Source: Trichosphaerium sp. ATCC 40318
Lineage: Eukaryota; Protista; Tubulinea
Reading direction: 5' to 3'
DNA: 64,000 nucleotides
Assembly (NCBI GenBank): GCA_038496445.1
Contig: JALMLS010000304.1
Coordinates: forward strand, 186,001 to 250,000
Shown here: piece by piece, positions 198 to 64,000 of the stretch
How positions within the stretch are numbered: position 1 is the first letter of the stretch
How the letters are laid out: each line of letters opens with the position of its first letter
Notes under the pieces: model-generated
Told to the model about the DNA's origin: nothing
The model's input: the letters and a program-made list of their open reading frames with translations, nothing else
Databases searched by the model: none
Program-made: the position numbers and the translations under genes

Positions 198-997
198 TTA
201 TGGAATCCGAGTAATGGCTCCACATGTTGTGAAAACGAATGCTATCCACTTGAATACAATTACGCATAATGAAGCTAGTTTGAAAGGTTCATTATCGCAC
301 ATGTCACTGAAAGGATACTTTTTAGCTAGTATCTAAAAATCCGTAAACAAAAGAAACAGACAACATAAACCATGGTTTTTGTTCATCATACCACTGTCCC
401 ATAAATAAGCCAAATGACTGAAGTTATTCCAATGGCAAGAGAAGTGAGTATAATCAAAGCATAGCTTGCTATACGCATATACATCCTAAAGATTGCTACA
501 GCAGCAAGACCACATAGAAATGTTGTTAAAGCAGTAGCATCAACAAGCAACCTTTTGATTAACAATCATGTTAGCTAAAAGGAAGATAATTATGCAACTA
601 ATGATGTACCAAGCAGCCATTCCCATCGCTTAAAAAAGAACAAAAGTAAGGCGTCAACTTCTTGAAATTACAAAAAAATAACAAAACACAGAAAGCAATT
701 TCCTTAAATTTGATTTCTAAGCGTAATCACGTGTTAAACCACGTGGCTTTTTGTACAGATAGAGCTACATTAAATATAGATAAAGTGTTATTGCGGTTAT
801 TACGTACAATATTGCTCGTCTGTGTCTATGTGACTACAAAGATCATTCCAGTATCGTAGAGAAAATATAAACTCTGTGATGATAGTGCCAATACAAACGA
901 ATAAAACGCTGAAAAAGATAATCCTTACTGTGCAAACGTAACGTGGTCTACGTTCTTTGTAATATTCAGTACGCAGGAAGTCGTCTGTATCCGACAT
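198..997 (-). CDS. Small multi-pass membrane protein, unknown function (4 exons)
   Basis: Spliced frame MSDTDDFLR...IIFFSVLFVCIGTII...YSMGMAAWLLVDAT...VIWLIYGTVIL...GAITRIP* via three GT-AG introns; about 4-5 hydrophobic segments. Confidence 0.7.
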
Positions 998-1028
998 TTT
1001 GACCAAAATGGAGAATAGTTAGCTTTGC

Positions 1029-2503
1029 ATGCCAAAAACCATAAACGGTTTAGTTTCATCTTTTATGGCAAACGACACCGCTAAGAGGTGGTATTGGCGT
1101 AAACGAGATTGCTCGTGGGTACTTTACAACCAAGTTTGTTCAGAATTGCTAGAAGATGCGTTTACGCGTAACCAACTATGTTCGCGTATCGATATGGACA
1201 AAAACCGGCACTGCTATGTAAATAGCGCTGGGTTAGGTAAACAACAAGGTAAGAACAGTAGTGTACACGCTGACAGTAATCACTACATGAGTAGTATTAA
1301 CCTTATGACGGATAGACCCGCGACGAATTGCAGGACGGTTTATTAAGCGAGAAAGTGCTAGTTTGAACGGTACAGTTCATTTATGGGGTCACAAGTACAT
1401 ACAACCTTACTGGGAACCTTACAACCAAGATACAGCGAAAGGTACGTGAAAATAAGCCTTGCGATTGCACACGAGCTGACGCCATAAGAAGAAAGTGGTA
1501 GCGTAAATGTTAGTGAGTTGAAAATACTATCATGGAATGTGTGGTTCGGGAAATATAAGCTCAAAGAACGCTTGATTGGTAAGCTAGTAATGGCAATAGT
1601 ACCGTAAGCTTAGTGTATTCTTCTTAGGTCTATTGGATGTTGTTGCAAAATGTGACCCGCACGTGGTTTGCTTTCAAGAGGTATGTCGTTTTTTTTTGAA
1701 CGAACAGTTTCACTAAGCTGTTAGGTAACCTCACTTATGGAGCGCGTAATTCTTGGCCATCAATGGGTGAAATCGAAGTAAGCAGATAGTTGGTAAGCGT
1801 ATGTTGTTGATGTATATGTAGGCATGTTACAGATCCTGCAGCTCTATATTTGCGTTCGTATGGGTTGTTTATAATAAGCAAGTTTCCAATCCATAGCGCA
1901 AAGATGATAGAGCTCAACTCAAGAATGGGAAGATATATCTTACTTATCAACATCGTGGTAAATGGTAAACCACTTACAATAGCTGCAGTACACTTGGAGT
2001 CTTTGGTGAAGTATAAGAAAGCCAGAATTGAGCAAGCAAAGTATACAAAGGAGCAATTAAAGGAGTACAATGTAAGCACGCTGTTTCGGTTTTTTGTACG
2101 GTTTGTTTACTTATACTTCACAAAGGATGTTCTTGTTATGGGAGACTTTAACTTTGTTGATAAATCGGAAGCATCTTCTTTAATGGAAGCATCTTTTTTT
2201 GATTATGTTGACGCATGGACAGCAATTAAAGGAGAGGAATCAGGTATGGGTGTTTACAAGTACAAAGTCAACTTATTTGATGTTTTTCTAGGTGTGACAT
2301 TCGACACTGAAACAAATCCTATGATACGCATGGATAAACCCCGAATACCAGTTATTCAAACAAGAATAGATAGGATTCTTTCACGATCGACTACATGGAA
2401 AACTCAACATGTGGAATTACTCGGAAAAGATGCTTTAAATGAAAATCCAAAATTGTATCCTTCTGATCACTATGGGATAATGGCCACATTTGTACCAACA
2501 TAG
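1029..2503 (+). CDS. TDP2: TDP2-like EEP-family phosphodiesterase with N-terminal WWE domain
   Basis: EEP motifs ILSWNV, VVCFQEV, AVHLES, MGDFN, RIDRI, PSDHYG. The N-terminal WYWRKRDCSWVLYNQVCSELLEDAF matches the WWE pattern. Exons join through GT-AG introns (first 1249-1315). Confidence 0.8.
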
Positions 2504-2670
2504 ATCGTTACAATCCATTTGGAATATATGCTAAAAATGTGAGGGGAGCTAATAAAACATATTTGTTTTATTCCTTAGGACTTTTTTTAATTTCCTGGCT
2601 TTTCTGGCTTGACTTAAGTTACTTTTGTTAAGTACATCTATTTTACGTCAACCAACGAAAACAACAACAC

Positions 2671-3770
2671 ATGGAACTATCACAATACTTGAAGCGTATA
2701 GACTTTACCGAAGCCAGTGCTGAATCGCAAGGATTGACACGCCTTGCTTTGCTATCAAAACTACAGCTCCAAACTATTTTGCATGTGCCGTTTGAGAACC
2801 TAGATATACACCGAAAGGTGCCTGTAGTATTAGACGTGAATAAGATATACGATAAAGTCGTTACGAAGAAAAGGCAAGTTTCAAAAAACGTAAACTTTGG
2901 AGCTAAAACCACAAAGTCTGTCAAACAACTAACTAGCGCTTCTTCTTTTAGGGGAGGGTTTTGTTGCGAAGTGAACGCTGTCCTAGCATGGGCAATTGAA
3001 GCTCTAGGGTTTAAGTGCACACTCATTAGTGGAACTGTCTTCGATTTCAGTACGTGCCGTTGTTCAAGAATCTAAATGTTTCGAGTTTTTCTAAGAGCTC
3101 TTTTCGTTGCTTACTTATTTCGTTCAAAAGTTACTAGAGCCTACTTTAACTTTCCTACCCACCTCGTGATTATTGTTACCATTGAAGACAAGCAATACCT
3201 TGTAGATATCGGTTTCGGACCTGCGTCACCTTGTGCGCATGAGGATTACCGAACTCGCCTAACAATACCTAGGTGGACCTCTTGAGTTGAAGGAGAACGT
3301 TGTTATGAAGCAATATGATGGTCAAGAGTTTAAGTTTACCCTAACCGGAGAAACTTGGCTACTCACACTTAAACAAGGTGAAGACTTCGCCCCTTTGTTT
3401 AAGTTCAAAATTGAAGAGACTGAGCTATCGAGTTTCTCTGATGCTGTAGCCTTCACCTATGAAAAGAACCCAATGTTCACTACCAACTGCTTTATTACAA
3501 AGGTGGACGGCAACAAACGCCTAACGCTTTCCAACAACAAGTGAGCTTTTTTGAAGTTGTTTTTTGTCGCTTTGGTAATTTCAGGAATCATTTCTCATTT
3601 CTTTCTTTAGGTTCAAAACCACTGATTTTACTACCGGAGATACAGTTGAAGATGTTGTAACTGTAGAACAGTATCCAAAGATACTCTTGTCGAAGTTTGG
3701 GTACACCAAGGAAACTATTACCGAGATAGGAGATTGCTTTAAAGAGGGTTTCATACCAAAGCAAAAGTAA
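2671..3770 (+). CDS. Arylamine N-acetyltransferase (NAT family)
   Basis: YLKRI, VPFENLDIH and the catalytic triad motifs RGGFC (restored by removing GC-AG intron 2874-2951), PTHLVIIV and YLVDIGFG; stop TAA at 3768-3770. Confidence 0.9.
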
Positions 3771-4281: not shown

Positions 4282-5734
4282 ATGAAGGTTTGTTTTATGA
4301 TTTTTACTATCTTAACGCTTTTAATATCTTATATGCCATAGAGTAGCGAAACAAAGGCAAATAGCCTTATTACAGGCTTTTTGGCAGCTGCATTTTATGG
4401 TTTGTCGTTTACATGCCCTATTTGACGTTCTTACGCATATATAGTTACTGTGTCGATATCTATGACGTTTTTCAACAAGGCATCACATAAAATCACGTTC
4501 CATCACTAACTGTACCTTTCAGGCCGTACTATCTGCGTTTAAATTCGGTTTTCCATTGTCCATACTGTGCGTAACAACAAAACAACAAAAAAAAGATATC
4601 TTACGTTTAAAAAAAGAGCAACACAACTCTTAATCACTGTATGCGTATTACTTGTGCTAAATGCTGCATCTATAATTAAATTACCGCCATTCAGCATAAA
4701 ACTTGCCAAGACAGTACGTATTACAGTTCCTCATGCTATGTAAATAATTGCTTTTTGTTAGCTGTTCCCTGTATCTTGTTGTTACTCTCTTAATGTTGCA
4801 ATCGCATTGACAGCGCTATCCAAACTTAACGTGCCGATGTATGGCACTCTCAAGCGTATGGCTGTGTTGGTAGTACTTGCTGGAGAGTACATAGTTCTTA
4901 AGAAATCAGCTAGTTCAGCAACTATTCAATCAGTACTTGTTATTGCTTTTGGCACGTGTTTTCAACAGTTACTCTTAATTTTTTTTGACTTCATTTTTTA
5001 GGCGCTCTTGTTGCTGGTTTGGGTGATCTTGAATTTGATTTATATGGTTATTTACTTGTTGGATGTAGTTGCCTTTCTCAAGCGTGCTATCTACTATTTG
5101 TTAAGAAGATAAAAAACGAAACAGGCAACAGACATACATTATTTGATGTTGTTAATTTTTTTTTAAGTGATTTCTACAATGACTCTGTTGTTTTACAATA
5201 GTTTGCTCTCTCTTCCATTTGTGGTAGTATTAGCATTCTTCAATGGTGACTTTAAGTACACGGGTATTCTTTTATGAGTATAATCTAAACGATTTTTACA
5301 GAGGTGTTCCAGAGTTCGATCAACTTTGGGATCCACAATTTCAAGTAAGTACACATTTTATTGAAGAGTTTCTTCAGCGACATCTAACTTCTCTTGAAGA
5401 TAATGCTTCTTGTTTCATTGTGTATGGGACTAGTACTTAACTACAGTATATTTTTATGTACTGCAGTAAACTCACCTCTCACGTTGGTGGTATCAGGTAA
5501 GCAATGTAAAATTTGACAAGATCATTAATTTTTGTTTTAAATGAAGGTCAATTGAAAGCAGTGATACAAACAGTGTTGGGTTTGTTCATACTTGGTGGTG
5601 TTAAAGTTACAACGTTAAACTTAGTTGGACTAGCCATAAATACATCTGGTGGGTTTTGGTACAGTTATGAAAAATACAGACAAAGCAATCAACCATCTAC
5701 AAATGAAGCGCCCGATAGCAATCACAAAGTGTAA
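4282..5734 (+). CDS. Nucleotide-sugar transporter (SLC35D / TPT-like family)
   Basis: SISMTFFNKAVLS, ALSKLNVPMYGTLKR, LLFYNSLLSLP, FLCTAVNSPLT, GQLKAV, GGFWYSYEKY; about 10 introns, three with GC donors. Confidence 0.88.
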
Positions 5735-6174
5735 ATAATAAAATTTCTTTCCATGTCAACACTTGGGAAAACCAACTTCATTTTTGAACATGATTGTACT
5801 TTACTTGTGAAGCTTCAAAAAAGAACAAAATAACATTCATGGATAAATTGTTTTTCCGGAACCTTATGTCGTAACCTGGAAATACAATCTACCCTAACAC
5901 TCTCGGTAAGAACGAATAATGCAGATTTTCATGAAAGGAATATTAGTGAATGACCGTCATGCAAATTCTCCGGTGCTTTTTAGTAAATGGTAAACTGAGT
6001 CTCAATATGGTTATGTTACCAACTCTAAAATCCAAAAAAGATCAATATAGCTCTACGAGATTTGTCTACTTCTAGCAAACCGTGAGTCCTGCTCAATGTT
6101 CACCAACCCTATTAGGCCTGGTATATTTAAATGTGTCACGTGAACAAGTTTATTAATACAGTTACAAAGCAACA

Positions 6175-6596
6175 ATGGCAGCTACTCCTCAAACAAACGA
6201 AACACTGACACTAACTTACGTTAAACGAGATGCTACAGGTGATAAGAGGTGGCTTACAGCAAGAGGAAAGGCGTTCTTACAACCAGAGACACTGAAAGCC
6301 CATTTTAACGCCGACTGGACAATTGAGAATAAAAAAATATACAAATATCGCATTGTTTCAAAGGTCCGTGGGTGTAAGCGGTACGATGAACTTTGGATAT
6401 ACGAAACTAATTAAGTAATTTTTTTTTCAGCGTATTAACCAGGTTGTCAGAGTGGTACTTTCCAGGAAAAAACGATAATGTTGACACTGGAAAGAACGAT
6501 GATATTTGGAATCCATTACACTTTGCTGCAGGAAGGCGTCAATGGACAATGTTCGCTGATCACTCTCATGAAATTTACTTTATTAACGACAATTAA
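6175..6596 (+). CDS. Small Trp-rich hypothetical protein, copy A (one intron 6381-6430)
   Basis: Near-identical to 7312-7662 except for an internal replaced segment. Splicing GTACGA...TTTTCAG restores the frame into LSEWYFPGKND. Confidence 0.6.
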
Positions 6597-6915: not shown

Positions 6916-7311
6916 GCAAAAAGTGCAAGTTGAAATGTTTCTTTTTGACGTGTAACAGCTACAAGCCTAACGCAAGCATGTGTTAACCGCCGTTCCTTAA
7001 ACTGTATTATTTTTAGCTACCCCTTCAGAGTATCTATCCTAGGTAGTAAAGTAGTAGCAGGAGCTTGCGCTCTGCCTCTTGTTTGAAAACACCCAAAAAA
7101 CCTTGCTGTTGCTCAACTGTTTTCTCAGAAAAAAAATAGTAACGTGACTGCTTGAACATGCAACTGCAGTAAGGCTCCACAGTGTTGTATTTGGCTAGTA
7201 TAGGTACTCTTAAACTGTTACAATTGAATTGTGCTGCACAAGGACACTTCCAGGAAGATTGTCAAATGTGAGTCATCACGTGAACACGTTTATTTGTACA
7301 GTTACTCAACA

Positions 7312-7662
7312 ATGGCAGCTACTCCTCAAACAAACGAAACTCTCACGCTAACCTATGTTAAAAGAGCAGCTACGGGTGATGAGAGATGGTTTACAGCAAG
7401 AGGAAAGGCGTTCCTACAACCAGAGACACTAAAAGCCCATTTTAACGCCGACTGGATAATTGAGAATAAAAAAATATACAAGTATCGCATTCAGTGGTTT
7501 TCTGGCAAGTTGTCAGAGTGGTACTTTCCAGGTAAAAACGATAGCGTTGACACTGGAAAGAACGATGATATTTGGAATCCATTACACTTTGCTGCAGGAA
7601 GACGGCAATGGACAATGTTCGCTGATCACTCTCATGAAATTTACTTTATTAATGACAATTAA
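7312..7662 (+). CDS. Small Trp-rich hypothetical protein, copy B (116 aa, intronless)
   Basis: Open frame MAATPQ...YRIQWFSGKLSEWYFPGKND...RRQWTMFADHSHEIYFINDN*, conserved in both duplicates. Confidence 0.75.
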   Translation: MAATPQTNETLTLTYVKRAATGDERWFTARGKAFLQPETLKAHFNADWIIENKKIYKYRIQWFSGKLSEWYFPGKNDSVDTGKNDDIWNPLHFAAGRRQWTMFADHSHEIYFINDN

Positions 7663-7855: not shown

Positions 7856-10157
7856 ATGGCTGCTCCTCCTATAACTCGCGCTAATTCCCACGATGACGCA
7901 GTCGCTGATGTCGTCAGAAGGCGAGCAAAAGATTGGCGTAACGGCGCTGTAGTGTACCAAATATTCGTTGACAGGTAAAAACTATTGTTTTATAGCCTCG
8001 TTATATGGGTGACGTTTACTTTTGTCGTTTATTTGTTGTTTTTACTAAAAATGAACAACAGATTTGCTCGCCCTTCAAAAGCTAGCCTTGAAAACAAGGT
8101 GACGAAAGGATATTATAAACATCCAAGAGTTTTGCAGGAGTGGAACAAAAAAATACCCCAAAAAGGTAAAGTATCAGTTAATTCTGTCCTTTCGTAATAA
8201 AAACACTAGGGGAGTCGACATCAGCAGGTTATTGGACACATGAATACGAGTTTTGGGGTGGAGACTTAAAAGCGCTTCTTTCGAAGTTTGATTACCTCAA
8301 AGAGCTTGGTCTTACTGTGATATACTTGAATCCAATACAAAAGGTAATTTTAATCTTGATACAAACACGTGAGAAAAAATCATAAAACTTGAACACAAAA
8401 CCAATTAAAAACTTTTTTTTTAATTTGGATATTACCTTGTTCATAAAGCTTCGTTGCTTAGAGAATTGACTAGTAGTATTGCGATCACTATTGGCGTATT
8501 AGAGTCCAATATTATTAAAAACGCCCGAACAAATAACCAATGTCTTTTAGGGTGTTTCTAATCATCACTACGATGCTACAGATTTTGTAAAAATATCACC
8601 TGAACTTGGTACTGAAGCTGATTTGAAGAACCTTATTGAGAAGTGTCATTCAAAGGGGATGAAAGTAGTACTTGATGGTGTGTTTAATCATGTTAGTATG
8701 AATCATCCCTTTTTTATTGACGCAATGAAGAATGAAAACAGTAAATACAAGTACGCAAAGTTGCATTGTTTGCAGTTTTAGTTTGTTTTTTTTTTTGGAT
8801 TTATTTGTAGTTTTTCACACAATCACGTGATTTTATTTTTCTGACATGATGAATGATAGAGATTGGTTCTATCTATCTGTGGATGGTTGGTACAGAGCAT
8901 GGCAAAATGTCACAAATCTACCTGAATTAAACTTAGAAAACCCTGATGTTAAAGTACGTGTAATACATTTGATGGTTGTTTTTTGATGGCGTTATTTTAG
9001 AAACATGTAATGCAAACACTTACAAAATACTTGTGTCTCGGTATAGATGGATGGCGTTTAGACGCTGCAAATGATGTTGGATTTCCTATGCTTGCCGAGA
9101 TGTCTCAAATATGTCATGTAGTAAAACCAATGTCGCTTGTAGTTGGAGAGGTGATTGCGAACAACACGATTTAGTTTAACAAAGATTTTTTAGGTCTGGA
9201 ATTATCCAGAAACGTGGTCGCCTGCTTTAGACTCTGTTATTAACTTTGCTTTGAGGAGGATTATATTCGATCTAGTAAGAGGACAGGTACAGTAATAAAA
9301 ACCCATGTGACATTCACTTTGATTGACCCTTTGTTTAGATGAGCGGAAGGGTAGGTGGACGAAATATTAAGCATATGATAAAGGATACAGGCTTGGATGC
9401 AATATTAAAGGCATGGATAGTTATTGACAACCATGATACAAAACGACTTGTAACTGAACTACCTCATCACTGGCAGCAAGGCGCCGCAAGGTAAGCGAAG
9501 AAACTTCAGAATTTTATAACTGATGCTTAGAATACTTCAATTCGTACTTCCTGGATCTCCTTGTATATATTATGGATCTGAGCTTGGTATGTCAGGTGGT
9601 GATGATCCAGAAAATAGAGCACCTATGCGTTGGGATCTAGTAAAAGACAATAAGGTCTTAAAGGTACGAAAATAACAACTTAAGTTGAATATTTTTTTTG
9701 TCGATTCTAGGGCCTTTGCTTCGATTCTTAATACGCCTTTAGTTATATAAAGCTCTTATAAAAATGCACAACTCTTCTCCTGCTCTCAGATACGGCTTTT
9801 TTAGACTACTAGAAACAGAAACTTTACTTGCTTTTCAAAGATTTACAAGTAGTGTCAGAGAGGTACTAAACTATCCGTCTATTTTTAGAATAAATCAATA
9901 AGGAAGCTAATTTATTATTCTTTTAGACTTGTATAGTAATAGCAAACTTTACTTCAAAGGAAGTATCTGAATCTCTGATGCTTAGAGAGTCTAAATTCAT
10001 GACTGGAACAATTCTTAAAGATTACTTCTCAAACTTGAAAATATTAGTTGAATCTGGTTGTATAATAGCTACAGTACCTCCAAAGACTGTATATGTATTC
10101 TTTCCTATCATTAAGGAGAAAAAGGGAAAGTACTTTTTGTATAAACGTGTTCAATAA
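7856..10157 (+). CDS. GH13 alpha-amylase family glycosidase (neopullulanase/cyclomaltodextrinase-like)
   Basis: DWRNGAVVYQIFVDRF, FWGGDL, SNHHYD, LDGVFNHV, catalytic GWRLDAA / VGEVW / IDNHD, PGSPCIYYGSELG; about 10 introns. Confidence 0.92.
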
Positions 10158-10635
10158 CAATTTTTTTTCTCTTTTTTTTCTTCTTTCTTTGCTTCACCTT
10201 TGCTCTCCTTTATTGTCCTCTCCGTCAATGAAATAGTGTATTATCTGTGAATTGCAACAAAATGTAGGACGTAGAATAGTCCTTGCCAGTAATACATAAC
10301 GCTTAAACCAGTTAATTGGCAGACCCCGCACCTTCATACCAGAAATCCGTCAAAAAATACAGCACAGAATTTGGTGCATAAATTGCGTATCCTATTTAAA
10401 GCGGTTTGTGGAAGGCATTCACTTACAAAACGTTCACCACTCATAGCCTTGGTGTGGTTTTCAGCGATGCCTATGAAAGGTGCGCGTATAAAACACGGAA
10501 TCGCCAATAATAGTAAATGACATTTTCAGTTTAGGAAAGTCACCATTTTTTTTTTGTTGAGTCTAAAATATTCTGTTTGCTGTTGATTTGTTTAACTTCA
10601 CGTGAGTGAAGCTCAACCACGAGTAGTCTAGAACA

Positions 10636-13168
10636 ATGGGCCCTTTTTTGGCCTTCATCTGGCTCGCAGGTTTTGTGGGCCTCATTGTTATGTTGTTCTT
10701 GTATTTAGAGAACGAGGGCTATAGAAACCACTATAGTTCGGTAAGATTACTAATCCATTTAACGTTTAATTTAATAAACAGCGCTACGCAAGGTACAGAG
10801 ATACCCTCGCATGGGATAAGTCCGCATACGCGGAATTACAAGATAGAGTAAGTTTTTGCGTTAATTTATTTGTTTGACGCTCAAACTGTGCAGCTTTGCA
10901 ATGAAAACCCCGGTGTCCATAACCTTAGAGTATTTATTGGTACATGGAATGTTGGTGCGTAACGCTTACTACAAAAAGATCTGCCTGTTATCAATACACT
11001 CTCTAATACGTGTAGGTGATAATGCGCCAGCTAATGACAAGCTCGGGGAGTGGATTCAAAAAGACTACGATATATACGCTATAAGCGCTCAGGTACGCGT
11101 TAATTACGCATCAGAAACACATAAAAAACGTCATATTTGTCAGTATTTTATAAAAGGTAAGTAGCCGGCTAAACCTTATAGGAGTGCGCATACCCGCCGC
11201 GAGGCCATTCAACAATTAACAAGGACTGGATTGCAGCTATTCGTGCATTTTTTAAACAAAACGGTCAGCGCTATAAACTGGTTGACACTATAGACTTGCG
11301 TGAAGCTATTAGGCTCAGCGTATGGATAAAGGTAAACATTACATTTGAATCACAACGCACGAAAATAAAAAGGAGAAACTTGAAACTTCTGAATTTCTCA
11401 AGTTTTCTCCTTTTTTTCATATTTTCTCGCTTGGGAGGCTTCCTTTTCATTCTTTTTCTATAGGCAGATCTACGCCCACTTGTCAGTAATGTTCAAAGAG
11501 ATAAAATTGCAACAAAGTTTCCAGTATTATGGCGTAAAGGTGGTACAGGCACGTTCATATTTTTTTGGGCTGTTTTTACCTACTGGCTGACACGTGATAT
11601 GTTAGCTATCAAGTTCGATTTTTTATCAACTTCAATGCTCTTTGTAAATGCACATTTTACCGCTCATCAACACAATATTACTTCACGTAATAACGATGCT
11701 CAAATGATTATGAGAAAGATACGTCTTGGAAATAAGAATTTTGATATGGGTAACCAGTTTAATTATGTGTTCTGGTACGTTCATACAATATTACAGTTTT
11801 TTCAACATGTTGCTTATTCACATTTTCATAGGTGTGGTGATCTTAATTATAGAATTGAAATGGATAAAGAAAAAGCTCTTAACCTTATAGACAATGCACA
11901 ATGGACAGATCTTGAAAAACATGATCAACTAATGTAAGTCTATCAGTTTTTTATTTTTTTACAGACTAACCTCATACTTGTAGTAATCAAATGCGTGAAA
12001 ATAATGTACTGGATTCATTTGTTGAGCAACCTATCCGGTTTCACCCAACATATAAGTGGAAGAGGAACAAAGGTAATATTATTTGTACAATAAGAAAAAA
12101 AAACGTAGCCTTAATAACAAACTTAAGGTGATTACGACAGAAAAGCACCTCGTGTCCCAGCTTGGTGTGATCGAGTATTATCAAAAACACTTAAAGGCAG
12201 TCATATAAAACCAATAGCGTATGACGCTGTTACAACAATGCTCACTAGGTGATTATCTGTAAACTTTTTTTTTAATTGATGTTTGTTACTTACTTTTTGT
12301 TATCAAAAGTGATCACCTCGCTGTGTGGGCTGGTTATGAAATACAAGCAGAAAATATATTCTATAGTATTGGTAAGATTATTAACTACGCTAACTTACAT
12401 TGTTAACAATTAATACAATAGGACAAGATAGCCATGAATACACTATTGACTTTTCAACAATCGAAGTAAATTTGAACGAGAAAATATCTTACTCAAAGAA
12501 AAATCCAAAACAAGAACATGTTGTGATATGTGCACCATTCCTAAAAGAGACTCAAAGCACTTGCAATGTACGTAAAACAAACACAAAACCTTAAAAATAT
12601 CCATCAAAAAGAAATACAAACAAAACACTAAAACGACCTTTGTAGCCATCAAACACTATTACACAAGATACAAGTCTTACTGCAATAACATGTAGACTTA
12701 CTGAACAAGCTATTTCGAAACAATACTTATACCTTGTTGTTTATCGTAATACAAAAGAGTCAAAGACAGAAATATTAAAAGGTACTGGTTTTCCTTCTTT
12801 TATCTTGCTTTTTTTTTTTCTGTTTTTGTTTTATGCGCGATACTATAGCGATTACATAGAGTTATTGTATCTGTCTACACGTCGCGCTATATTAAATATA
12901 GAAGGTGGTGTTTGCAAGATAATTTAGTTCACTTTATCTTGCCATAGAAACCTTCTAAACATTTTTTTCTGAATGACAAGAAAATGCTCTGTTTTACTTT
13001 ATTGAAAAACAAAAAAAACTGACTTCTTGCTTTCTTTTTGTAGGTGATGCACCGCTGTTTTTAGGTGATTTAGTAAACAAACCAAATATGTCAATGTCTC
13101 TTGATGTTTATGAAGGTGGTCTTGTAGTTGGGTCTATTTTAGTTCGTGCCACATTGACACCAATATGA
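10636..13168 (+). CDS. Inositol polyphosphate 5-phosphatase with N-terminal hydrophobic anchor
   Basis: FIGTWNVG, ISAQE, FVNAHFTAH, WCGDLNYRI, FHPTYK, PAWCDRVL, SDHLAV. Confidence 0.9.
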
Positions 13169-13647: not shown

Positions 13648-18960
<5,313 letters not shown>

Positions 18961-45671: not shown

Positions 45672-45729
45672 AGTTGACTTAGTGAACATAAATTTGATAA
45701 ACAAAAAAAAATGATGTTCAAAAAGATGT

Positions 45730-52787: not shown

Positions 52788-53001
52788 TGCGTTTGGGTTG
52801 TTTAAATTGAAAATGAATTTAAAAAAGTGTCAAATTAAGTCACATTTGGACTTCCGTTCAGTTAATTTCTGGTCACTTTAATAGCTATTAAAGTCATTCA
52901 AATAATTACGGTCGCGGGAATAAACTGAGCATGTACGAAACGCAAACAACTTGAGAAAAAATTTAGATGGTGTAGTGAATGCCACGTGGAACTTTTTCTC
53001 T

Positions 53002-53115
53002 TAGCGAATGTTATTATTTATTTATCAAAATAATTTTAGCAAACTTTATTTAAACGTATAGCGAATGTTACTATTTATTTATCAAAATAATTTTACCAAA
53101 CTTTATTTAAACGTA
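53002..53115. repeat. Two-copy 57 bp tandem direct repeat
   Basis: TAGCGAATGTTA(T/C)TATTTATTTATCAAAATAATTTTA(G/C)CAAACTTTATTTAAACGTA occurs twice. Confidence 0.9.
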
Positions 53116-53426
53116 TTAGCTAGTGGTATTATCATGCCAAATAAATACAAACCTGTTATGTGATGTGCAATCAAATCCTTTTTTTTTCTTGTTTTTTACA
53201 AGCCTTTCGTATAATTTTCGTAAGCGATTAACTAGTTTTCGTTTATGCTAGTGGTATGAAATTAATGGCTTGGGTGGCTTTTCAGTTGCGACAAAACTCA
53301 GCTTTTCAGCTTACGCACTAAACCCTTCATACATTTACGGCCTTCGTAAAGCAAGATTAGTCCCTGGCGTCAACAAAAATCTCAGGAGTAAAAAAAAAAA
53401 GGTGTTAAACGTTACAAGCTGATTAT

Positions 53427-56400
53427 TTACAGTCGTGTGGAGCATTCGTTTTTGCTACAAATTGTACATTTTGAAGGTCTTGTTTTGTATTTGTAAATTA
53501 CCATAGGCACTTCAAGATCTTCATCATCAAGAGATGCAACAACATTCAAATCAATGAAGTTTTGCGATGGTAAAAACTTGTATTTATGATATAGAACATC
53601 TTGAACCAATACGTCCATAAAGTTCTGTCTGTTACCAAAACACATGTAAAGTAATATTGTGGAATAACCAATAAGCTAAAAAAAAAGAATAAGAACCAAA
53701 CGGGTTAAAAATAAACAAACTTTTGAATAAAGTTTTGGGTTATCGTTAAGTAGTATTGACAAGTTATGCTCGCTTGGATATAACCCTTTAGTGATAATTT
53801 ACGTAAATTAGACAGTATAATACAAAAGCATTCAGTTCATTGCTGTAAATGAAAACAGTAAAAACCCTCAAATAGACTTTAAATCGTACCTCTACAGAGC
53901 AATTGTGGTACTTTTTAGAAACAAGAGATAAAAATTGTTCTATAGTCAAATCTCCTTCATCTATGATAAGTTTATCCCAAGTAGTAATTGGAGGTATACT
54001 CGGAGCACTTGATTCCTATATAACAATTATGAAATGAATGTTGACGGAGGTATATATACCAGTTTCTTTGGTTCTGCTGCTTCGAATTGCATAAAAAGGT
54101 TATTTTTTGTAATGATATTATGGTCATTAGGAAGACTAGAATTATTTCCAAGTATTTCATAAACACCCATGGCCATGAGACCCTACTATATATTAACAAT
54201 ACTAAACGACACAAATTCAAAAGAAAGTTCTTGAGCTTAAGAAAAAAACGAACATGATGAATGAGTAGTGTACTTTTGAGAGCAAAGAACACTCTTTTAA
54301 AATTTGAGGTTTGAAAAAAAAGAAGGAAAACAAAAGAGACGTACAGCAACGATAGAAATAGTAGCAGGCATACTTGGTTTAGTGTTTGTTAAATACCTCT
54401 CTGCACGTAATTTATCATAGCTTTTATACCTTATGTTCTCTACTTTAAAGTCACCAGCTCTTCTAGAAAACTCTGTTTCAAGGCTACCAAGATTGAATGT
54501 ATTATCTAGTTTGTTAATACAAACATTATTCAAACAAAATTCTTTAATACTCTTCAATAGATTATCTCTGATTATTTTTGTTGCGTCACTCAACATTTGT
54601 TTAGCATCCATGGAAGCAATCTCATCTTCAGATTTATCACACTTAAAGTCATCCTCAGAGAGATTCGTGGCTCTATTGTGCGCATACGGTCGTAACGTTG
54701 TTGATCTTAGAACAACCAAGAAGTCTTCAAACGAGTCGACTGGAGGAATATTATATGCCTTTGCATAGAGGTTACTTGTAACGTGAAGAAATCGTTGGTG
54801 AGTCTCAAGAGATAATGATAATTCCAAAGCAACAGGTAATCGTTTAGAACCAGACCAAAAAGGTTGACCTACAACGAATCATTAGCTTATTGAAAACGAA
54901 CTAGAGTTTGACAAATAAGAGGGTTGTAAGTACCATCAGCTGATTTGTACGATGGAGGGAAATGATGGTGTAATACTTTTACACTGAAGTCAAAATTATA
55001 AACAAAAAAATCTGCAGCATGTTGTATGCAATCGCTAAATGATTTTGTGTAATACGCTGTACGAATCAAGTTTTCTATTCTTTCTATTTCGGTGAGCCTC
55101 TGGCTGTGTGAATCAGGGTCCTATAATAAGAGAATTACAACTCAAGTACATACTAACGGTGAAGAGCTAGCTATGGTTGAAAAAAAAACTCACTTTGTCT
55201 ATATTTTTCATTAATTCTTGTGCGTCTTGAATCTCATTAACAAATATCTTTGTATATTCACCTTTCATATGTGCATAGCATTGAGAAGGTTTGGAAGCCC
55301 ATCCGTGCTTTGAAATCTCCATAGGTTCTTCAGTTTTTACAATATCTAAACCACTACATGTTTTGAATGGAATTAAAACCTACAAACAAAATCATAAGTC
55401 TTGAACTTGTACGCTTATTCTATATCTTTCTGGTCCTAAAAAAGAAGCTGCCGTACACCAGTGAATCCCCTGAAGCTACGAGAACCTCCTTCAATGACAG
55501 GCTTTTCCCAAAGTATGGATTTTTCGTATAAATAGCGATGTCCTTGGCTATAAAGAATGAAAGAGTTATTACTTTTCTTTCGTTTATCGTTCTTTTAGTA
55601 CCGTGTATGAGGAGCAAACAATATTGTTGCTTCTTTGTAGACTAAGTGGTCGTCTAAAATATTATTCTGGTCTCTAGATGAACTGCGACCAACCACAGCG
55701 TCATGGAATTCAACAGAGATATCCTTGTTTATCATCGATATTCCTTTTAAAGCAACAAGGCCTTTTTTAGAAGAAAGAGAAGATTCCGTTGCAAATCTAT
55801 GTGTAGCAATATCACTTTGCGAAATACAAGCGTTATCTATCACTGATAGTGATCCACCATTTGCTCCAAACCCCATGAGCGCTAGATCTAACATAATGTT
55901 TGAGAGCAGGTACAAAAATGTTTCGCGTACTTTGAAGGAGAGCATTTGAAAGTCCTCCACAACCGCCCATTACGCCCTTCTGCTTTCCAATTGTATGTAT
56001 CATATTTTCTCCAAATATACATATTTGATGGTCGTGTCGGCATCCGGTGGGCGTTGTATTTCCTCTATCTTTGACAGAAGGAAGCAAGTAAAAAAAATCT
56101 CCATGCAGCCACTGATTAAGTGGTTCATGTAGCCCAGATATCTTTGTAACTTCTGAAGCTAGTATACCACCAACAACAGAACCTTTTTAAATCTTTTAGC
56201 TTCAACTTAATAAAATACACTTCAAAGAACGCACAGATTCCAGGAAGCTCACACTTTAAGTAAGAAAACATTTTTTTAATTGTATCTTCCAACACATCCT
56301 CAAGTCCAATAAGATCCTGGGGTTTCTCCATGGATTCATTGTATTCATTTGCTAATAAGATACATTCTACAACAAAAGGTAAGACATTCTTAGCATAGTC

Positions 56401-57890
56401 TCAAGAGATTGTTCTTTCTCTTTTTTTTACCTTTGAAATCCTTTGAAGAGGCAATGTTCGGATCCTTGTTGTGCTTTGCCCTAAACAGCCACAATGCCAT
56501 TAAACTTATATGTAAGTTCGTAAGCCTTCCATTGAATTGATTAATTATTCCAAGACAGGATAGACAATCAAACTTTTTAGCACTATCCTACAGTAGGTGT
56601 AAGTATCCATGCCATTACAAAAGTTATTTCCAATCACTCGTTTCAAACTACAACAACTGCAAGACGTACAACAAGACTGAGGTGCGATATTTGTTTTGGC
56701 AGGTCTACAGTAGTTACAACACCCTCTGTAGCAAGTAAAGGCCATTCCTATTATAATCTTAACATCAAGTCATCAATCAAACGATTAATACCTTGGCTTG
56801 CGCATAACCAACTGAAAAATAGAATTTTGTAGCACATCGTCGCCTTGATTTCGGATCCGCTACTAACGAGAAAAGTCTAACGCTAACATGTCCAATACCC
56901 TCAAGTTGAGGTATCATAGATACCCCACTAAATACTACTTTTGCACCTTCTTCGAATCTGTGTCTCGTAACAGAGCTTACGCAATATTCAATGACACCAA
57001 ATTGCTCTTCATATTTTCCAGCAATTTGCGAAATAACTACTTCCTCAATTTCTGTTCCTATGGCGTGTGTATTAAGTTAGTAAGCGAAATATTTGTATCT
57101 CCAAAGTTAAACCTGTCTCGTTGATAAGATGGTTTGGTCCAAAATCGGAAAACACGTGAAAGCTGAGCTAAAAAAATGATGAGAAAACTGTTCTCGAGTT
57201 TCCAAAAAAAAAACTAACACCGAAATTAGCTGCCAACAGGAACACGACTGGTTTCTTTTCACCCATGCCATACTCATCAATAACAATCCTATCTCTACAC
57301 CACGAATTCCATTGTTTCAAAGCTATAGAATCTCAACACTAAGTCATAATCAATACGTACTCTTCAAAGGTATATCTATTGTAACAACGAGTGCATCATA
57401 TTGTTGTAGTGCGTCCTCTGTTATTGGTTTGCTTCTAGCATCAACTTTCGTATCTGTTCTAAACTCTCCAAGGCTTCTTGCGCACGTTGGCCCTCTAGGA
57501 AGTGTTAATCTTGCATATGAAGACAGAAGCTCTTATTCACCGAATTCCACCAACGTCTTTTTCTGTGATGAATGAATTAGCTCCAATGTCGCTAATTACG
57601 ATCTCTTCATTATCAAAAAGCGTCAAGCGCCGTATACCAGACAATACAAGGTTTTTGGCTGTTTCAACACCAACACCTTTACATTGTATCAGCGGCGTGT
57701 TTTTCTACATTTATGACGGCCAATGAGTACCTTTTGCTCCTATAACCAACACATTTAACTTTTGAAGCCTAATCAACGCATCCCCGCCACAAGCACATAC
57801 TAGACGCGCGTATTTGGTGTAAAACTAAATAAAAGTTACCAAAAGGTACAAAAAAGATGCCAATCCTACCTTAGGCGGGATCTCCGACAT
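53427..57890 (-). CDS. UBA1/UBA6-like E1 paralog, probably catalytically inactive
   Basis: LNVLVIGAKGVGVETAKNLVLSG, GGILASEVIK, WLHGDFF, PFWSGSKRLP, HVTSNLYAKAYNIP, C-terminal UFD (DDEDLEVP); the active-site motifs are degenerate. Confidence 0.82.
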
Positions 57891-58219
57891 TGCGTGTTAA
57901 CAGACCAACGAAAACCAGCTTCTGAAACATTAAGGCAAGTGCGTTTTCGGTCCAGACTATCTCACAAAAAAAAATGCTCTTTTCAGTTCCGAATTAACAA
58001 CGGAGTTCCAGCTCGTATACAACTTAATGGACATACATGAAACAGGTTCTAGACTCTACCAAGCAAGAAACTACGACACCTGCAAGTACATTGTTCTCGT
58101 TTCTTTGCATTCTTAGGGTAGTGACATGGCAAGCTCACATTGTTTTTTTTCCTGATTATGCACGAACTAATTTCTCCGGAAATACCCAAACATACGGGAG
58201 TTATTGACAATAAATATCC

Positions 58220-60370
58220 ATGACACTAACAACTCTTCTTGTACTGTTTTGTTGCTTTGCAGTGGTCATTCTAAAGCCGTTCAAATACGATCCTACGAAC
58301 TCTTCAATTAATCACGTGCATAAAGCTCTAACAAGCGGAGCGTCATGTCAGAGTACGGATAATTAATTATTGACAACTTTTCTCTGTTTTTCTCACCTTA
58401 CCAGTTTAAAACACGTGTTTTTAGCTATTATTTCCCAACATCTTGAGATTATTTACCAAAATGATGACAAAAACAAGTACCTTCATGCCATGATACGCGT
58501 CAATGAAAACGCTCTAAAGTGAGATACATAATGTTACTTGGTTTTAACCTAAACAAGGCAAGCGGCGCTACTTGATTCTATGCGCTACAAAGGACGAAGC
58601 GATGCTGATATTATAGCAGATCAACCACTCTTTTGCGTTCCATCAATTGTCAAAGATAACTACGACTTTGTAGGTGCGTGACACATTGTATACTTGCAAC
58701 ACTTTTTTCTAACTCATCAATCAGGTATGCCGACATCTGCTGGTTCAATAGCTCTTAACAATTCATACCCAATAACAAACTCGCATTCTGTTGCAGTGCT
58801 TCTTAATAATGGTAAACCACAAACCTCACGTGTAGCATCTAATTCTTTGTGAAAGGAGCTGTGATACTTGGTAAAGCTAACATGGCTGAATTCGCTACAT
58901 TCGGAACAAACACTATGAGGTACACCGCATTTGTATGCTCAAAAAAGTAGTTAACATCTTCAAGCTCTCTTGGTGGTCAGACCTTGAATTTCTTCAGGCC
59001 TAGCCATACTCCTTATGGTTCTAGTGGAGGAAGTGCAACTGCGTCTGCGGCTGGCTACGCTGTTATTGCCCTTGGAACTGGTGAGAACGATCAGCTCGGC
59101 CACGCTGATTTTTTCAATAGATACAAGTGGTTCTATCCAACTACCTTCAAGCGCTGCTTCTCTGGTTGGTATACGGTCTACTCTTGGATTAGTATCTATT
59201 AAAGGTATTGCTCCATTAAACGTTTATCGAGACGTATCTGGACCACTTTGCAAAACTGTTCTAGATGCCGCAAAAGCTCTTCAAGTACGTCAATGATGTA
59301 TATTATTACTTTTTATTCGTACACTAAACAACTCTTTGTAGGTAATGGTTGACCCGTCACAGTCCTCAAAGGGTCCTCAAAACTATGTCGATTATGTGTC
59401 AAAGTTAGGACTACAAGGTGCTCGACTAGCATTTGGTAATGGAACTTTACAGTACATTGTTTCTCCAGAGATAACAATGATACCGGATAAACAGGTATTA
59501 CAAAAACAACTTCGTAGTTTCTAACACAAACATAAGGTCGTTTCTATGGTTGAAAATGTATTGAATACAATGGTATCAGGTGGTGCCACTGTAATAAGTT
59601 CAAATGTATTTTCAGAGCTTTTTCTTATGATGAGCTCTGGTACTGATGAAGGCACATGCTTTCCAAAGGTAAAAATTACTTTCTGAAACATTTTATTAAG
59701 ACTTGCTTTCTTAGCAATTTAAATACTTCTTTAATGAGTACCTATCGCGATTGTCACCAAATGCTCCAATGAAAACACTTAGTGATATCGTGGCATCAGG
59801 TGCGGCACAGAAAAACAGTTTGCAAACGAAGCACTAGCTAACACATATCTTTAAAACTATAGGAAAGTACTTGCATCGTTATGGTGTAGATGACCTTTTG
59901 AAGTCCGCTGCAGACTCTAATACTACCACTGATCCATCAAAAGATAAAGATTGTTCAGCATTCGTTGCTCTGAAAGAAAAAGCTGCAAATGTAAGCCACC
60001 TAATTTGATTGTTTACATTTGTGACAAGTTGCTCTAGTTTTTGGAATCACAAATGGACAAGCTTAATATTTCAGCTTTTATTTATCCTCCGGCAAACCAA
60101 AGACCATTTTACTTGTCAGAAACACTTCCTCCACCAAAAGGTACTCACACCTACTTTTGAAAATCACGTGCAAGATTTTATTTAATTGTATACTTTTTAG
60201 GATGGTTTCCATTTGTTGAGGTATCTGCATTTACTGGACTTCCTGCTATCACAGTACCGATTGGATTTATTGAAGAACTTCCATTTGGTTTGAATATAAT
60301 AGGTCGTAGATACCAAGAGGCAGAGCTTATTAAAATAGCTTCCGGATTAGAAGCAGCCCTAAATATCTAA
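58220..60370 (+). CDS. Amidase-signature family protein with signal peptide
   Basis: IVKDNYD, ILGKANMAEFA, GSSGGSA, LGTDTSGSIQLP, GLPAITVPIG; hydrophobic N-terminus. Confidence 0.9.
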
Positions 60371-60414
60371 TAATAAATATATTTTTCTATCTTGTTTGTC
60401 TATTGCTAGAGGTG

Positions 60415-60564
60415 TTACATGTTAAGGGTTACAAGGTAGTGTGGGTATACCCTGCTGTTATCAAACAAAGCATATATTCTCCCTTTTGAAGACTCCATGC
60501 TACACGAATCACATCGAGTAATCCCAACACGTTCAAGGGTACCAGTTCGATTAACCACGCCAAT
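60415..60564 (-). pseudogene. Isolated C-terminal fragment of the PARP/ART domain (third copy)
   Basis: Translates IGVVNRTGTLERVGITRCDSCSMESSKGRIYALFDNSRVYPHYLVTLNM*, homologous to the last exon of both PARP genes. No FHGT exon found upstream. Confidence 0.7.
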
Positions 60565-61251
60565 ATTGAGTTAATTCTTCGTTAGTGTGAGAACTTCCAA
60601 GGTGCCAGCAACATCTACTACATTCATCAGCCATACAACTCTGCGCAAGCTTTGTGATATTTTGGCTTCACGAACTTGGTGTACTACTCAATTCTAGTTA
60701 TGTCTCTAAAAGCTACGACTACGTGACCAGTGTCAATGGTAACAAAGAAGTTGGCACTGCCCAACGAGAAGACATTGATGGTAACGCTTGTATTCGCTAG
60801 GTGGCGATCTGCGCTCTCGTAAATGACGGCAAAAAAGAAAGTAGCCTACTTAATGAAGCTAGCGCGTAGTTGTACTTGTTACATTACATACCTTGCTAGC
60901 AAGAGTAGTTAAATGTGAGATTATTTTTTGTACCATTTACAACAATTTGCTCAAACAATAAATCCATTCGCAAGTAATTGACAATAGCACACAGGGCAAG
61001 GTTGCAAATGGATTCTAATTTCGTTTTGGTTTTTGTAAGAAAAAAAATGTGCACATTTTGTTATTATACCTGCCGGATAATGTTTACCCGTTTCTGTTTT
61101 TAGGTCTATAAAATTGAAAAATACCATATCCGTGGCGTGAGCTCCTGGCGAAGGCCTTAGAGGTATTGTTTTGTACTACACCATAAACAACTATTATTGG
61201 ACTCCATCTCAACTGCAGGCACTGTCACAAAAAGACTATAAATTGCAGAAA

Positions 61252-61873
61252 ATGGATCAAAATGATATTGAACAACCGTACAACCCAAATATAATACAAC
61301 ACCCACTTCAAATGGAAGACGAGGTAACAGATACAGTTGTAAATCAAGAACAACCGTACAATCCGAACATAATACAACCTCCACTTCAAACGGAAAACAA
61401 AACAACAGACACAAAAGCTAATGACACAGACGATTCTAAACCAACTAAAGTGTGCGTGATTTTCTTTATGTACTTGTCTTGTCGACGGCAGTTAACAAAA
61501 AAGTTAACTCGCCCAGATTTTGATTATACAAGTGCAAAATAAGTACTAATAATTTCTAAGAAAACTGGAGGGTCACGAGAGAAAAGATAGAAAAATGGCA
61601 TTGTGCTTGTACGTCATCTAGTATCACCTATTTTTGTACAGTTTTGCTGACGTACCAACAAGATTTGTTCTTGGGATTTTTTTTTGCTTTCCATGGTGTG
61701 CTGCTGCCATGTTTATCACTTCCAAAGATATGTTGACGAGGTATGATTCATAGGTTTTTTGCATTATTAATCCCTTTTTTAGAGTTTTTGGCATCATATC
61801 TCTTATCTTGCTTGTGCTTGAAACAATTGGAACAATTGTTTTTCTTTGTCTATTGTTTTTTGTGTGGTCTTGA
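61252..61873 (+). CDS. Small membrane protein with duplicated EQPYNPNIIQxPLQ N-terminal repeat
   Basis: Direct repeat 61270-61317 / 61348-61395; hydrophobic C-terminal exons RFVLGIFFCFPWCAAAMF and VFGIISLILLVLETIGTIVFLCLLFFVWS*. Confidence 0.55.
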
Positions 61874-62313
61874 ATGTCTGTTAGGTGCCTTGTCGCTGTA
61901 CCCATACTTGGATTGTACAAGATGCTTATGGTTGTATAGTGGTCTCAACATGGTGTACTCTGATTTCTGCAAAGTAAATACCTTTCCCACGAAGTCCATT
62001 ATTTGCAATGTGTTGTGCGTTTTTTTTAAAGAAGAGGCGAAAAAGTATGAGTTTTCTCGCCGAAAAGCGAAAACCTTGGCTCTAATGAAAATCGTCATTG
62101 GAATGTGATGTTCAAACCTAATTTCCAAATCAAAGCTTAACATTGTATGCCTCCTTAACAACTAAGAACTTTGCTAAATAGTTGAAAACTGAAAACTATT
62201 TTGTGTCACACAGCGCTTATTTGACTGATTATGACCGTTAACTAGTTCATCAAAATCATAAAAATTGGAACCTAACGGACGTAACAACAGTTCACGAACT
62301 ACCTAAAGAATAA

Positions 62314-63115
62314 ATGGATACCCTACCACCTGAGGCACTGACGCATATTCTGTGCTATTCAGACAGGAAGACGCTCATTTCAGCCTCTGGAGCTTGTAAC
62401 GTTATTAATGACATTATACGACAACGCATTGGGTTTAATAGTATCACGTTGAGAACGTCATCAGACTGTGCTATTCTTAAAGGAAGTCCATTGCTTAAAA
62501 ACACAAAAGTTGTTTACGCGTGTAAAACACCATCAGAAAACGACTTTAAATGTCTACGTGGTGTAAAAAATATATGTGCAAGCCATACACCTATTCCAGA
62601 TTCATGCATCCTTAGTCTAGTAAACGGAAGTCAAGAACCTATTCAAACTATAGATTTACGTTTTACGCGTGTAACTGATATCTCATTGAAGGCACTTAAA
62701 TGTACATACAATTAGTATAGCTGATTGTAATGTTACAATAGAAGGAATGAAAGCACTAAAAAATGTTAAAGACATAACGCTAAAGACTCCTCAAGATGTG
62801 TGGTTAAAACATCTTTGTAACGTTGATAAAATACATATTTACAATGATAGTGTGGCTATGGGGAAGTATGTAACAGATGAAGGGATCAAAGAATTGATTA
62901 ATGTCAAAGAACTTATCCTTCACTATTGTGCTGGATTAACAGATGAATGTTTCAAGAAACTTGTCAATCTAGAACACCTCACAATTTATCGTAATGAGTT
63001 GATTACAAATGATTGCTTGAAGTATATGAAGTCTTTAAAAACAATACGGATTTATTGGAAGACCCAGATTACACAAGAGGCTGTTGAAGCATTGGGTATA
63101 AAATGGATTATATAA
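62314..63115 (+). pseudogene. F-box-like + LRR paralog, intronless, frameshifted near 62700
   Basis: LPPEALTHIL F-box-like start and LRRs. KALK continues as VHTISIADC only in another frame. Confidence 0.7.
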
Positions 63116-63231
63116 ACATTATAGTTTTTCCTCTTTCTTTTGTAGACGGACTTATCTCTTCATTATTAATAAACGTCCGCGTGGCTTTAATACTTTCCTA
63201 CTCGATTAGCAAAACTATCCTCATAAGGACT

Positions 63232-64000
63232 TTATCTGAATGAGAGTACATTGCTGTGGGAGATATTTAATATCTGAACTGTGGTATCGTTTTATTACAG
63301 TATTTACACGTGTTGGGAAAAAATGAGTTCTATTCGTTTGCTGACCTAAAGTACAGCATATTACCCGTAGGTTCTTCTACTTCCATATCATCTGTATTAG
63401 AAGACTGCTTCTGAGCCAAGCGTTCCAAAAAGTCAGCACCAAACAACATCTTAGCTGTATTAAATGCAACTTTTTCTCCGATTATGTTATGTTCGAATTG
63501 ATCCACAGAGTCAAGTCTTACTGACGCCTGCTTTGCAATATCATTCTTCTTTCTGGCCATTTCCAATTTAAGAGATATAAGTGCATCCTAGGAACATATG
63601 AACAAAGAAGATCCAAGAACGAAAAACCAATCCCAGTTGTCGGGAGTAAAATTTTCTGTTTTTTTCAGAAATGAACAGGTTTAAAAAGGGTTGGTTTGTT
63701 ATATTACTTACCGGTAAAAGACGGGAAAATTGTTTGTAACTGTTTCTGCCAACAGTGTACCGTTGACATTTTGCATTTTCAGCACGTTTTAACGTAGCAA
63801 AAAATCTTGATTTTTGCTTTCCATTAACAACAAAAGTATAAGCATTACCAGCTTTACCTGCACGTGCAGTACGTCCCACCTATAATAAAATAAAACTCAT
63901 GTCATAATAAAACCTTTTAAAAGCAATCTAAATCAAAAGGTGACATACTCTGTGAACATATTGCTGTAAACTAAAAAGACCATTAGATGAATGAAGAATA
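63232..64000 (-). CDS. DEAD-box RNA helicase, C-terminal part (DDX51/Dbp6-like), truncated by the window edge
   Basis: Motif VI YVHRVGRTARAGKAG. The 3' end is uncertain. Confidence 0.75.

Follow-up and report, generated by a model that had tools for sequence, protein, structure and literature searches.

Why should one exact six-base palindrome recur about once per kilobase over genes that share no function, in their introns, in the gaps between them and even in their exons? The question is raised by a stretch of 64,000 nt (hereafter, the window) from the tubulinean protist Trichosphaerium sp. ATCC 40318, positions 186,001 to 250,000 of contig JALMLS010000304.1, in which an original prediction made from the sequence had pointed to an over-abundance of CACGTG. 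This hexamer is the canonical class-B E-box. The class-B E-box, or G-box, is bound by dimers of bHLH-ZIP, bHLH and some bZIP proteins, such as Cbf1, USF, Myc-Max, TFE/MITF, CLOCK and the plant G-box factors. We found the excess of CACGTG to be real and robust and its distribution to be unusual; for its function we offer a proposal.

Excess of CACGTG over background

A pattern search gave 52 exact CACGTG matches in the window, about one per kilobase, at all the positions listed in the original prediction and at no others. Positions are those of the whole window and, the sites being palindromic, are given without strand. In 100 dinucleotide-preserving shuffles, the expectation was 8.3 +/- 2.6 and the maximum 17, and Markov models of orders 0, 1, 2 and 3 gave expectations of 7.2, 8.8, 9.8 and 11.6, respectively, so that the excess is 5- to 7-fold. 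Even the order-4 model, which is built on the motif's own 5-mers and expects 31 occurrences, was exceeded (z = 3.8). The predicted strong excess over chance is thus upheld, although its background needed correction: the GC content of the window is 36.6%, not 34%, and the expected number is 7-12, not about 6.

Apart from A/T runs, CACGTG ranked first among over-represented 6-mers whichever background was used. No other palindromic hexamer was more than 3.4-fold over-represented, and the excess of the second one, AGCGCT, faded under a higher-order composition model. The enrichment was limited to the exact hexamer: all 18 one-base variants were at expectation, and the total of the ACGT 4-mer was merely 1.17-fold. 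A composition artefact, due to ACGT, the GTACGT splice donor or CpG, was rejected because the expectation does not rise above 12 up to Markov order 3 and the one-base variants show no excess. The original prediction had stated that the enrichment might disappear once ACGT and GTACGT donor composition was modelled, and it did not.

The sequences flanking the sites carried at most 0.08 bits of information per position, with a very weak preference for the context TCACGTGA (9 seen against about 5 expected), and self-BLAST of the window returned gene duplicates only. Because of these uninformative flanks and the self-BLAST result, the sites are independent occurrences and not copies of a repeat; a repeat family or transposon remnant was rejected on the same grounds, there being no common flanking sequence. 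No second motif was found to co-occur with the sites. A/T tracts were only slightly commoner near them, an association that is weak or absent. Across the window, A6 and T6 runs themselves reach about 4-5 times the base-composition expectation and are concentrated in longer introns.

The excess seems to be common to a relative, or possibly belongs to the same species. In an MMETSP sample (JGI 3300016894), the transcripts L001 and L005, which have the same GC content (37-38%) and come from a related or identical organism, carry two CACGTG each, namely 4 in 2.95 kb against 0.36 expected, which is about 10-fold. Contigs of unrelated organisms, compared alongside these transcripts, carried none.

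Sites in introns, gaps and exons

The window is gene-dense eukaryotic DNA with short introns. Searches for tRNA genes and Rfam families gave no matches in it, and no transposon domains were found. The genes that carry CACGTG are functionally unrelated; the products encoded in the window include endo/exonuclease-phosphatase proteins, an arylamine N-acetyltransferase, a kinase, a Brix protein, an E1-like enzyme, PARP14-like KH-WWE-PARP proteins, F-box/LRR proteins, a Kelch protein and a DEAD-box helicase. This agrees with the original view of a motif that marks unrelated genes about once per kilobase. Coding and non-coding DNA were mapped with a self-trained codon model; a naive classification by open frames was uninformative for sorting the sites. 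On the codon-model map, 39 sites are non-coding against 5.0 expected (about 8-fold), close to the 40 or so that had been predicted, and 13 are coding-like against 3.6 expected from composition.

Transcript contigs aligned to 19.4-25.4 kb define a plus-strand gene with 15 introns, and 7 of its 8 CACGTG sites lie within 5 of these introns, from intron 1 through intron 14. They are 19468-19473 in intron 1 (19374-19504), 20088-20093 (in a 14-nt palindrome, AAATCACGTGATTT) and 20242-20247 in intron 2 (20003-20317), 21835-21840 (15 nt from the donor) and 21918-21923 in intron 3 (21820-22075), 23174-23179 in intron 8 (23109-23203) and 24110-24115 in intron 14 (24098-24156), which is only 59 nt long. 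The introns thus hold 7 sites in 1,774 nt against 0.13 expected (53-fold; P about 1e-10). The exons hold one site in 3,429 nt, at 24402-24407 in the last exon of a transcript that ends at about 24542.

This RNA-verified gene (19340-24542, plus strand) has a 500-codon exon with seven copies of (D/N)(E/Q)YG-x-LPP and encodes a C-terminal Tyr/Ser-Thr kinase domain. The median length of its 15 introns is 59 nt. Among their donors (19374-24290), 6 of 15 begin with GTAC (GTACG or GTACA), and the C at intron position 4 is unusual; an excess of the GTACGT and AGTACG k-mers arises from these starts.

Could the motif act in RNA, as CACGUG in the pre-mRNA, either as an element for splicing or processing within introns or by pairing of two copies? 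The intronic position of 7 of the 8 sites in the verified gene would suit such a signal, as would the two sites in each of its two longest site-bearing introns and the few sites that coincide with CAC|GTG-type donors. We nevertheless regard it as highly improbable. The flanks show no asymmetry when they are oriented by transcription, divergent and convergent gaps have equal densities, the distance from a site to the donor or acceptor is not fixed, and palindromy has no reason in a single-stranded RNA motif. Moreover, only 4 of the 52 sites precede a GTGAGT or GTGCGT hexamer and only 1 of the 15 verified introns has a GTG donor; on these two counts, splice-donor overlap was also rejected as a cause of the excess.

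In gaps of more than 200 nt, the window-wide density was about 1.0 site per kb between same-strand segments, 1.3 in divergent and 1.6 in convergent gaps. At clear strand-block boundaries, the divergent gaps held 2, 0, 0 and 2 sites, and the convergent ones 0-1, 2 and 1. Because introns, divergent gaps and convergent gaps have similar densities, CACGTG is not promoter-specific. The original prediction of a concentration in introns and promoters is therefore retained for introns, through the transcript contigs of one gene, and dropped for promoters. Within non-coding DNA, the sites favoured neither exon edges nor gap centres nor long gaps.

These densities bear on ordinary cis-regulation, on which view the sites are conventional E-boxes of promoters, enhancers and intronic enhancers, read by several bHLH factors (CLOCK, USF, Myc/Max, MITF/TFE, SREBP) that jointly control a very large number of genes, and their high density reflects a compact genome with regulatory DNA in its introns. 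The identity of the motif with the canonical E-box speaks for this. Some sites are also placed as promoter elements would be: 6137-6142 and 7277-7282 lie 39 and 35 nt upstream of the start codons at 6176 and 7312, the former directly after a TATA-like box, and 728-733 and 740-745, whose starts are 12 nt apart, are paired within one divergent promoter gap, the first about 300 nt upstream of the ATG at 1029. In addition, a G-box-type E-box is prevalent at the transcription start sites (TSSs) of the compact, AT-rich genome of Amphimedon queenslandica (PMC4773876), and its open chromatin near many genes is enriched in E-box variants, which are one of the commonest motif classes there and for which a pioneer-like role was proposed (PMC13713027). 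On the other hand, divergent gaps are not enriched over convergent or intragenic DNA, no positional bias is seen inside gaps, the sites of the verified gene span intron 1 to intron 14, and near-cognate variants are not enriched. The excess also extends to synonymous exon positions, and the spacing is under-dispersed, whereas enhancers would cluster. Taken together, we judge cis-regulation of the ordinary kind to be quite unlikely.

The exonic part of the excess is seen when the protein is held constant. When synonymous codons were redrawn with the protein kept, 4.4 coding-like sites were expected against 13 observed (3-fold), and none of 300 trials reached 13; a codon-shuffle null likewise gave an excess of about 3-fold for exonic CACGTG. 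The frame NCA-CGT-GNN, the one that codon usage predicts, accounts for 11 of the 13. This frame is found at 8366-8371, and the corresponding x-Arg-x reading at 11591-11596 (in a phosphatase-family exon), 17177-17182, 17663-17668, 27017-27022 and 29692-29697, all of them coding-like. In a Kelch-repeat gene, the coding-like site at 14455-14460 encodes Pro-Arg-Ala, and the exonic site at 63861-63866 falls in Thr-Ala-Arg-Ala-Gly of motif VI of the DEAD-box helicase. The site at 1660-1665, in an exon of an endo/exonuclease-phosphatase gene, is read as His-Val within CDPHVVCFQEV. Two more are coding-like, one weakly so (44737-44742, in a 14-nt palindrome, TTGACACGTGTCAA) and one of uncertain strand (58827-58832).

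Spacing and symmetry

The sites are more evenly spaced than chance would place them. The coefficient of variation of the gaps between sites was 0.73 (p = 0.011 against uniform placement and 0.007 when the null took account of coding and non-coding compartments), and 15 of the 51 gaps measured 900-1200 bp, where about 5.3 were expected (p < 0.0002; scan-corrected p = 0.0006). Consistent values came from site counts in 4-kb bins, with a variance/mean ratio of 0.44. No long-range period in the site positions was detectable within 64 kb. For the non-coding sites alone, the coefficient of variation was 0.87, so that the series becomes more regular once the exonic sites join it. The exonic sites tended toward long intervals without non-coding sites (median 4,022 against 2,704 bp, p about 0.1), a direction that fits a coverage requirement and is not significant alone. 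With unrelated genes, no landmark preference and spacing evener than chance, the original idea of a genome-wide signal rather than a regulon gains support; the chromatin barrier factor or methyltransferase that it offered as the reader would be a candidate.

The symmetry of the sites often extends beyond the hexamer. Palindromic arms of at least 2 bases were found at 12 sites against 4.4 expected (p = 0.0006), and arms of at least 4 bases at 4 sites against 0.8; for comparison, 7% of other palindromic hexamers have arms of at least 2. The four longer palindromes that had been predicted were recovered at 20084, 51268, 58408 and 44733, with arms of 4, 6, 4 and 4 bases. The second of these, CTAAACCACGTGGTTTAG (51268-51285), is the single 18-nt perfect palindrome of the window and has the site 51274-51279 at its centre. 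The third, the 14-nt AAAACACGTGTTTT, surrounds 58412-58417 in the divergent gap 57681-58561, which also contains 58313-58318. The sequence ATCACGTGAT occurs five times in the window.

Turnover of sites between duplicated genes

A tandem duplicate of about 5.4 kb with PARP14-like genes, of 65% identity overall, carries five CACGTG in each copy. Only two sites are common to both. As seen from the translation, one encodes a conserved His-Val codon pair (36933-36938 in an exon of copy A and 42381-42386 in an exon of copy B), and the other spans an exon end and the 5' splice donor on the minus strand, CAC|GTGAGT at 35936-35941 in copy A and CAC|GTGCGT at 41374-41379 in copy B. It was considered whether these shared sites are conserved intronic islands; this was rejected, both being under coding or splice constraint. 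Every free non-coding site is copy-specific. Those of copy A are 33166-33171 and 33599-33604 in the convergent gap, the first 98 nt downstream of the stop codon of an F-box/LRR gene, and 35271-35276 in a non-coding gap; those of copy B are 38640-38645, between the tandem copies and in the ATCACGTGAT form, and 43375-43380, in a diverged or inserted stretch. An exonic difference is a CpG transition, with CACGTG at 43217-43222 in copy B and CACATG in the aligned copy A. The duplicate thus shows a number of sites that is kept and positions that have turned over, not conservation site by site.

The two copies lie on the minus strand at 33600-38000 and 39050-43400 and have KH-like, WWE and PARP catalytic exons. 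A partial third copy is found about 20 kb away, at 60400-62010.

Such turnover would suit a neutral by-product, that is, a bias of mutation, repair or gene conversion, or break-and-repair at CAC|GTG, which makes the motif faster than it decays and leaves it functionless. The complete replacement of non-coding sites between the paralogues and the simple CpG transition at 43217 agree with it, and the longer palindromes with unrelated arms could have arisen where a break at the centre was repaired by snap-back or through a hairpin. We modelled a Vsr-type repair drive as context-specific T:G-to-C:G conversion on the full hexamer mutation chain. An effectively infinite drive yielded at most 4.9-fold CACGTG and removed CATGTG and CACATG, whereas the data show 7.2-fold with these precursors at expectation, so that a Vsr-like drive as the sole cause was rejected. 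The simplest generator hence fails quantitatively; a neutral one should moreover yield Poisson spacing rather than under-dispersion, and the sites lie in surroundings slightly more AT-rich than average non-coding DNA. A functionless origin appears very unlikely to us.

Remaining sites and neighbouring genes

Two sites occupy probable short introns, 4953-4958 in a 53-nt gap with plus-strand coding segments on either side and 60165-60170 in a 54-nt gap. Other non-coding gaps hold 8824-8829 (160 nt; in a 12-nt palindrome, AATCACGTGATT), 10599-10604 (869 nt), 15446-15451 (233 nt; ATCACGTGAT), 26079-26084 (727 nt, in a minus-strand block), 47957-47962 (118 nt), 50283-50288 (280 nt) and 57153-57158 (306 nt). 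Non-coding DNA also contains 46396-46401, again as ATCACGTGAT, 46687-46692 and 47020-47025.

The sites 6137-6142 and 7277-7282 are counterparts upstream of a tandem pair of small orphan genes (6176-6595 and 7312-7662), of which one copy only has an intron. The homology of the pair starts exactly at the upstream CACGTG. No homologue of the 116-aa orphan protein was found.

The F-box/LRR genes at 32082-33068 and 62314-63115 are intron-poor. A site at 32026-32031 lies 56 nt upstream of the ATG of the intronless first gene, and 63307-63312 lies in the convergent gap between the second and the helicase gene. The nearest neighbours of these genes in feature space are protein clusters of giant viruses (Nucleocytoviricota), and the best sequence relatives of the F-box/LRR protein are MMETSP/JGI transcripts and a vannellid amoeba sequence; no near-identical match to it was found in a large protein database. 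Two exact look-ups of proteins and two metagenome scans gave no match either, and GC content excluded a chlorarachniophyte.

A stretch of 2.5 kb with little coding potential (50900-53500) has raised GC, a CpG observed/expected ratio of about 1.2 and three CACGTG sites, 52207-52212 and 52983-52988 besides the one in the 18-nt palindrome; no Rfam or Pfam matches were found in it. The longest CACGTG-free interval, 4.2 kb, coincides with a divergent E1-like (ThiF / UBA_E1_SCCH) gene on the minus strand (53460-57680), and a 176-aa exon of this gene had no match among 1.8 billion representative proteins.

A candidate density-selected E-box signal

The explanation that we favour, though tentatively, is that CACGTG may be a double-stranded DNA signal selected for its density and read by a dimeric E-box-binding protein, as a general seed of open chromatin or of barriers. 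It would be a position-free signal at the DNA level, kept at about one per kilobase in host introns, in both kinds of intergenic gap, and in exons where the protein permits. Selection would act on local density or coverage and not on single positions. We favour selection on density because the exact word, the excess at synonymous positions, the under-dispersed spacing and the equal site number of the paralogues are found together. A dimeric reader of duplex DNA is preferred over a single-stranded RNA signal because of the palindromic core and the symmetric flanks. The reader would bind the class-B E-box (G-box) duplex symmetrically, a candidate being a bHLH or bHLH-ZIP factor of the USF, Cbf1, Max, TFE or CLOCK kind, and it would seed open chromatin or barriers generally instead of regulating a set of genes. 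That a protein reads CACGTG, which protein this is and what its binding does are the parts that we infer.

Several points weigh against this explanation. A halo of weaker variants and a bias toward TSSs are typical of transcription-factor sites, and neither was seen. The near absence of flank preference is closer to recognition by enzymes of the restriction/modification type, and the palindromic arms of 4-6 bases, whose sequences differ, exceed the footprint of a bHLH protein. No purely intronic site is conserved between the PARP14-like copies, so that there is no sign of constraint at the level of single sites. Finally, all statistics rest on one 64-kb window and a home-made coding map.

The likeness to enzyme recognition sites brings in a system like HIP1 (GCGATCGC), the highly iterated palindrome of cyanobacteria (PMC5861425, PMC4390886). 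In such a system, a bacterial-type DNA methyltransferase specific for CACGTG would modify the hexamer, perhaps together with a mismatch nuclease. Methylation would create or use the sites, or both, for instance to mark self DNA, to discriminate between strands or to shape the chromosome, uses of the kind proposed for GCGATCGC. Both motifs are exact short palindromes with CG at the centre, occur about once per gene or kilobase in coding and non-coding DNA alike, and are spaced non-randomly in an excess beyond composition; the quasi-regular spacing over both kinds of DNA is as described for HIP1 (PMC5861425, PMC4390886), and the window motif adds zero tolerance of variants and almost no flank information. 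They differ in that HIP1 is a bacterial octamer at 15-300x, whereas the window motif is a eukaryotic hexamer at 5-7x. HIP1 also has site-level conservation between genomes and cognate orphan methyltransferases, whereas the free sites of the window duplicate are not conserved. As for its origin by repair, the T:G-to-C:G drive alone reaches about 4.9-fold at most and would empty CATGTG and CACATG, and the site count does not track CpG depletion, measured as the local CpG observed/expected ratio, within the window. To our knowledge, eukaryotes rarely have sequence-specific methyltransferases that serve a function of the host, and this also counts against such a system, which is the main rival of the E-box explanation and which we consider unlikely.

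Comparison with other known systems

The class-B E-box or G-box sites of other organisms have the same core, and their symmetric recognition as duplex fits the palindromic extensions in the window, where a weak TCACGTGA preference is seen as well. The difference lies in the distribution, the window motif being evenly spread at about one per kilobase over introns, 3' gaps and exons of unrelated genes, with neither TSS bias nor variant halo. The genome of Amphimedon queenslandica resembles the window in being AT-rich (about 36% GC) and very gene-dense with short introns and in having CACGTG as a prevalent non-coding motif (PMC4773876, PMC13713027). Unlike that promoter and open-chromatin motif, the window motif does not favour divergent gaps, and most of its documented sites are in internal introns.

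Two further systems offer analogies of function. Periodic A/T clusters (PATCs) in introns of Caenorhabditis elegans prevent germline silencing (PMC4947018). Like the window motif, they are non-coding, mainly intronic in endogenous genes, unrelated to gene function and proposed as a mark of host against foreign DNA; they are, however, a composition with a 10-bp period that acts via DNA shape, whereas the window motif is an exact word. The chicken HS4 element provides a possible model for a barrier, in that an E-box-type site bound by a bHLH-ZIP protein shields genes from spreading silent chromatin. Binding of USF at HS4 is reportedly part of this barrier. HS4 is a single element at a domain border, whereas the window motif is sprinkled across the window.

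Implications

In the literature searched, we found no description of a genome-wide, evenly spaced excess of CACGTG in a eukaryote. If the pattern extends over the genome, an exact six-base word would be kept evenly at about one per kilobase in the organism's own genes, synonymous codon positions included. Such an organisation is known from bacteria (HIP1, uptake sequences, Chi), and we found none described for a eukaryotic nucleus. A speculative extension, to which we give little weight at present, is that CACGTG may be to this eukaryote what highly iterated palindromes are to bacteria, a host tag by which resident genes are told from transposons and viral DNA. The reader of such a tag would be dimeric, either an E-box protein or a sequence-specific methyltransferase, and selection would act on coverage, not on position. 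Should ordinary E-box regulation prove to be the explanation instead, the organism would still be using one motif at an unusual density and with its centre in introns. If genome-wide, on the other hand, the pattern would make it testable how a compact genome that methylates or silences transposons recognises its own genes.

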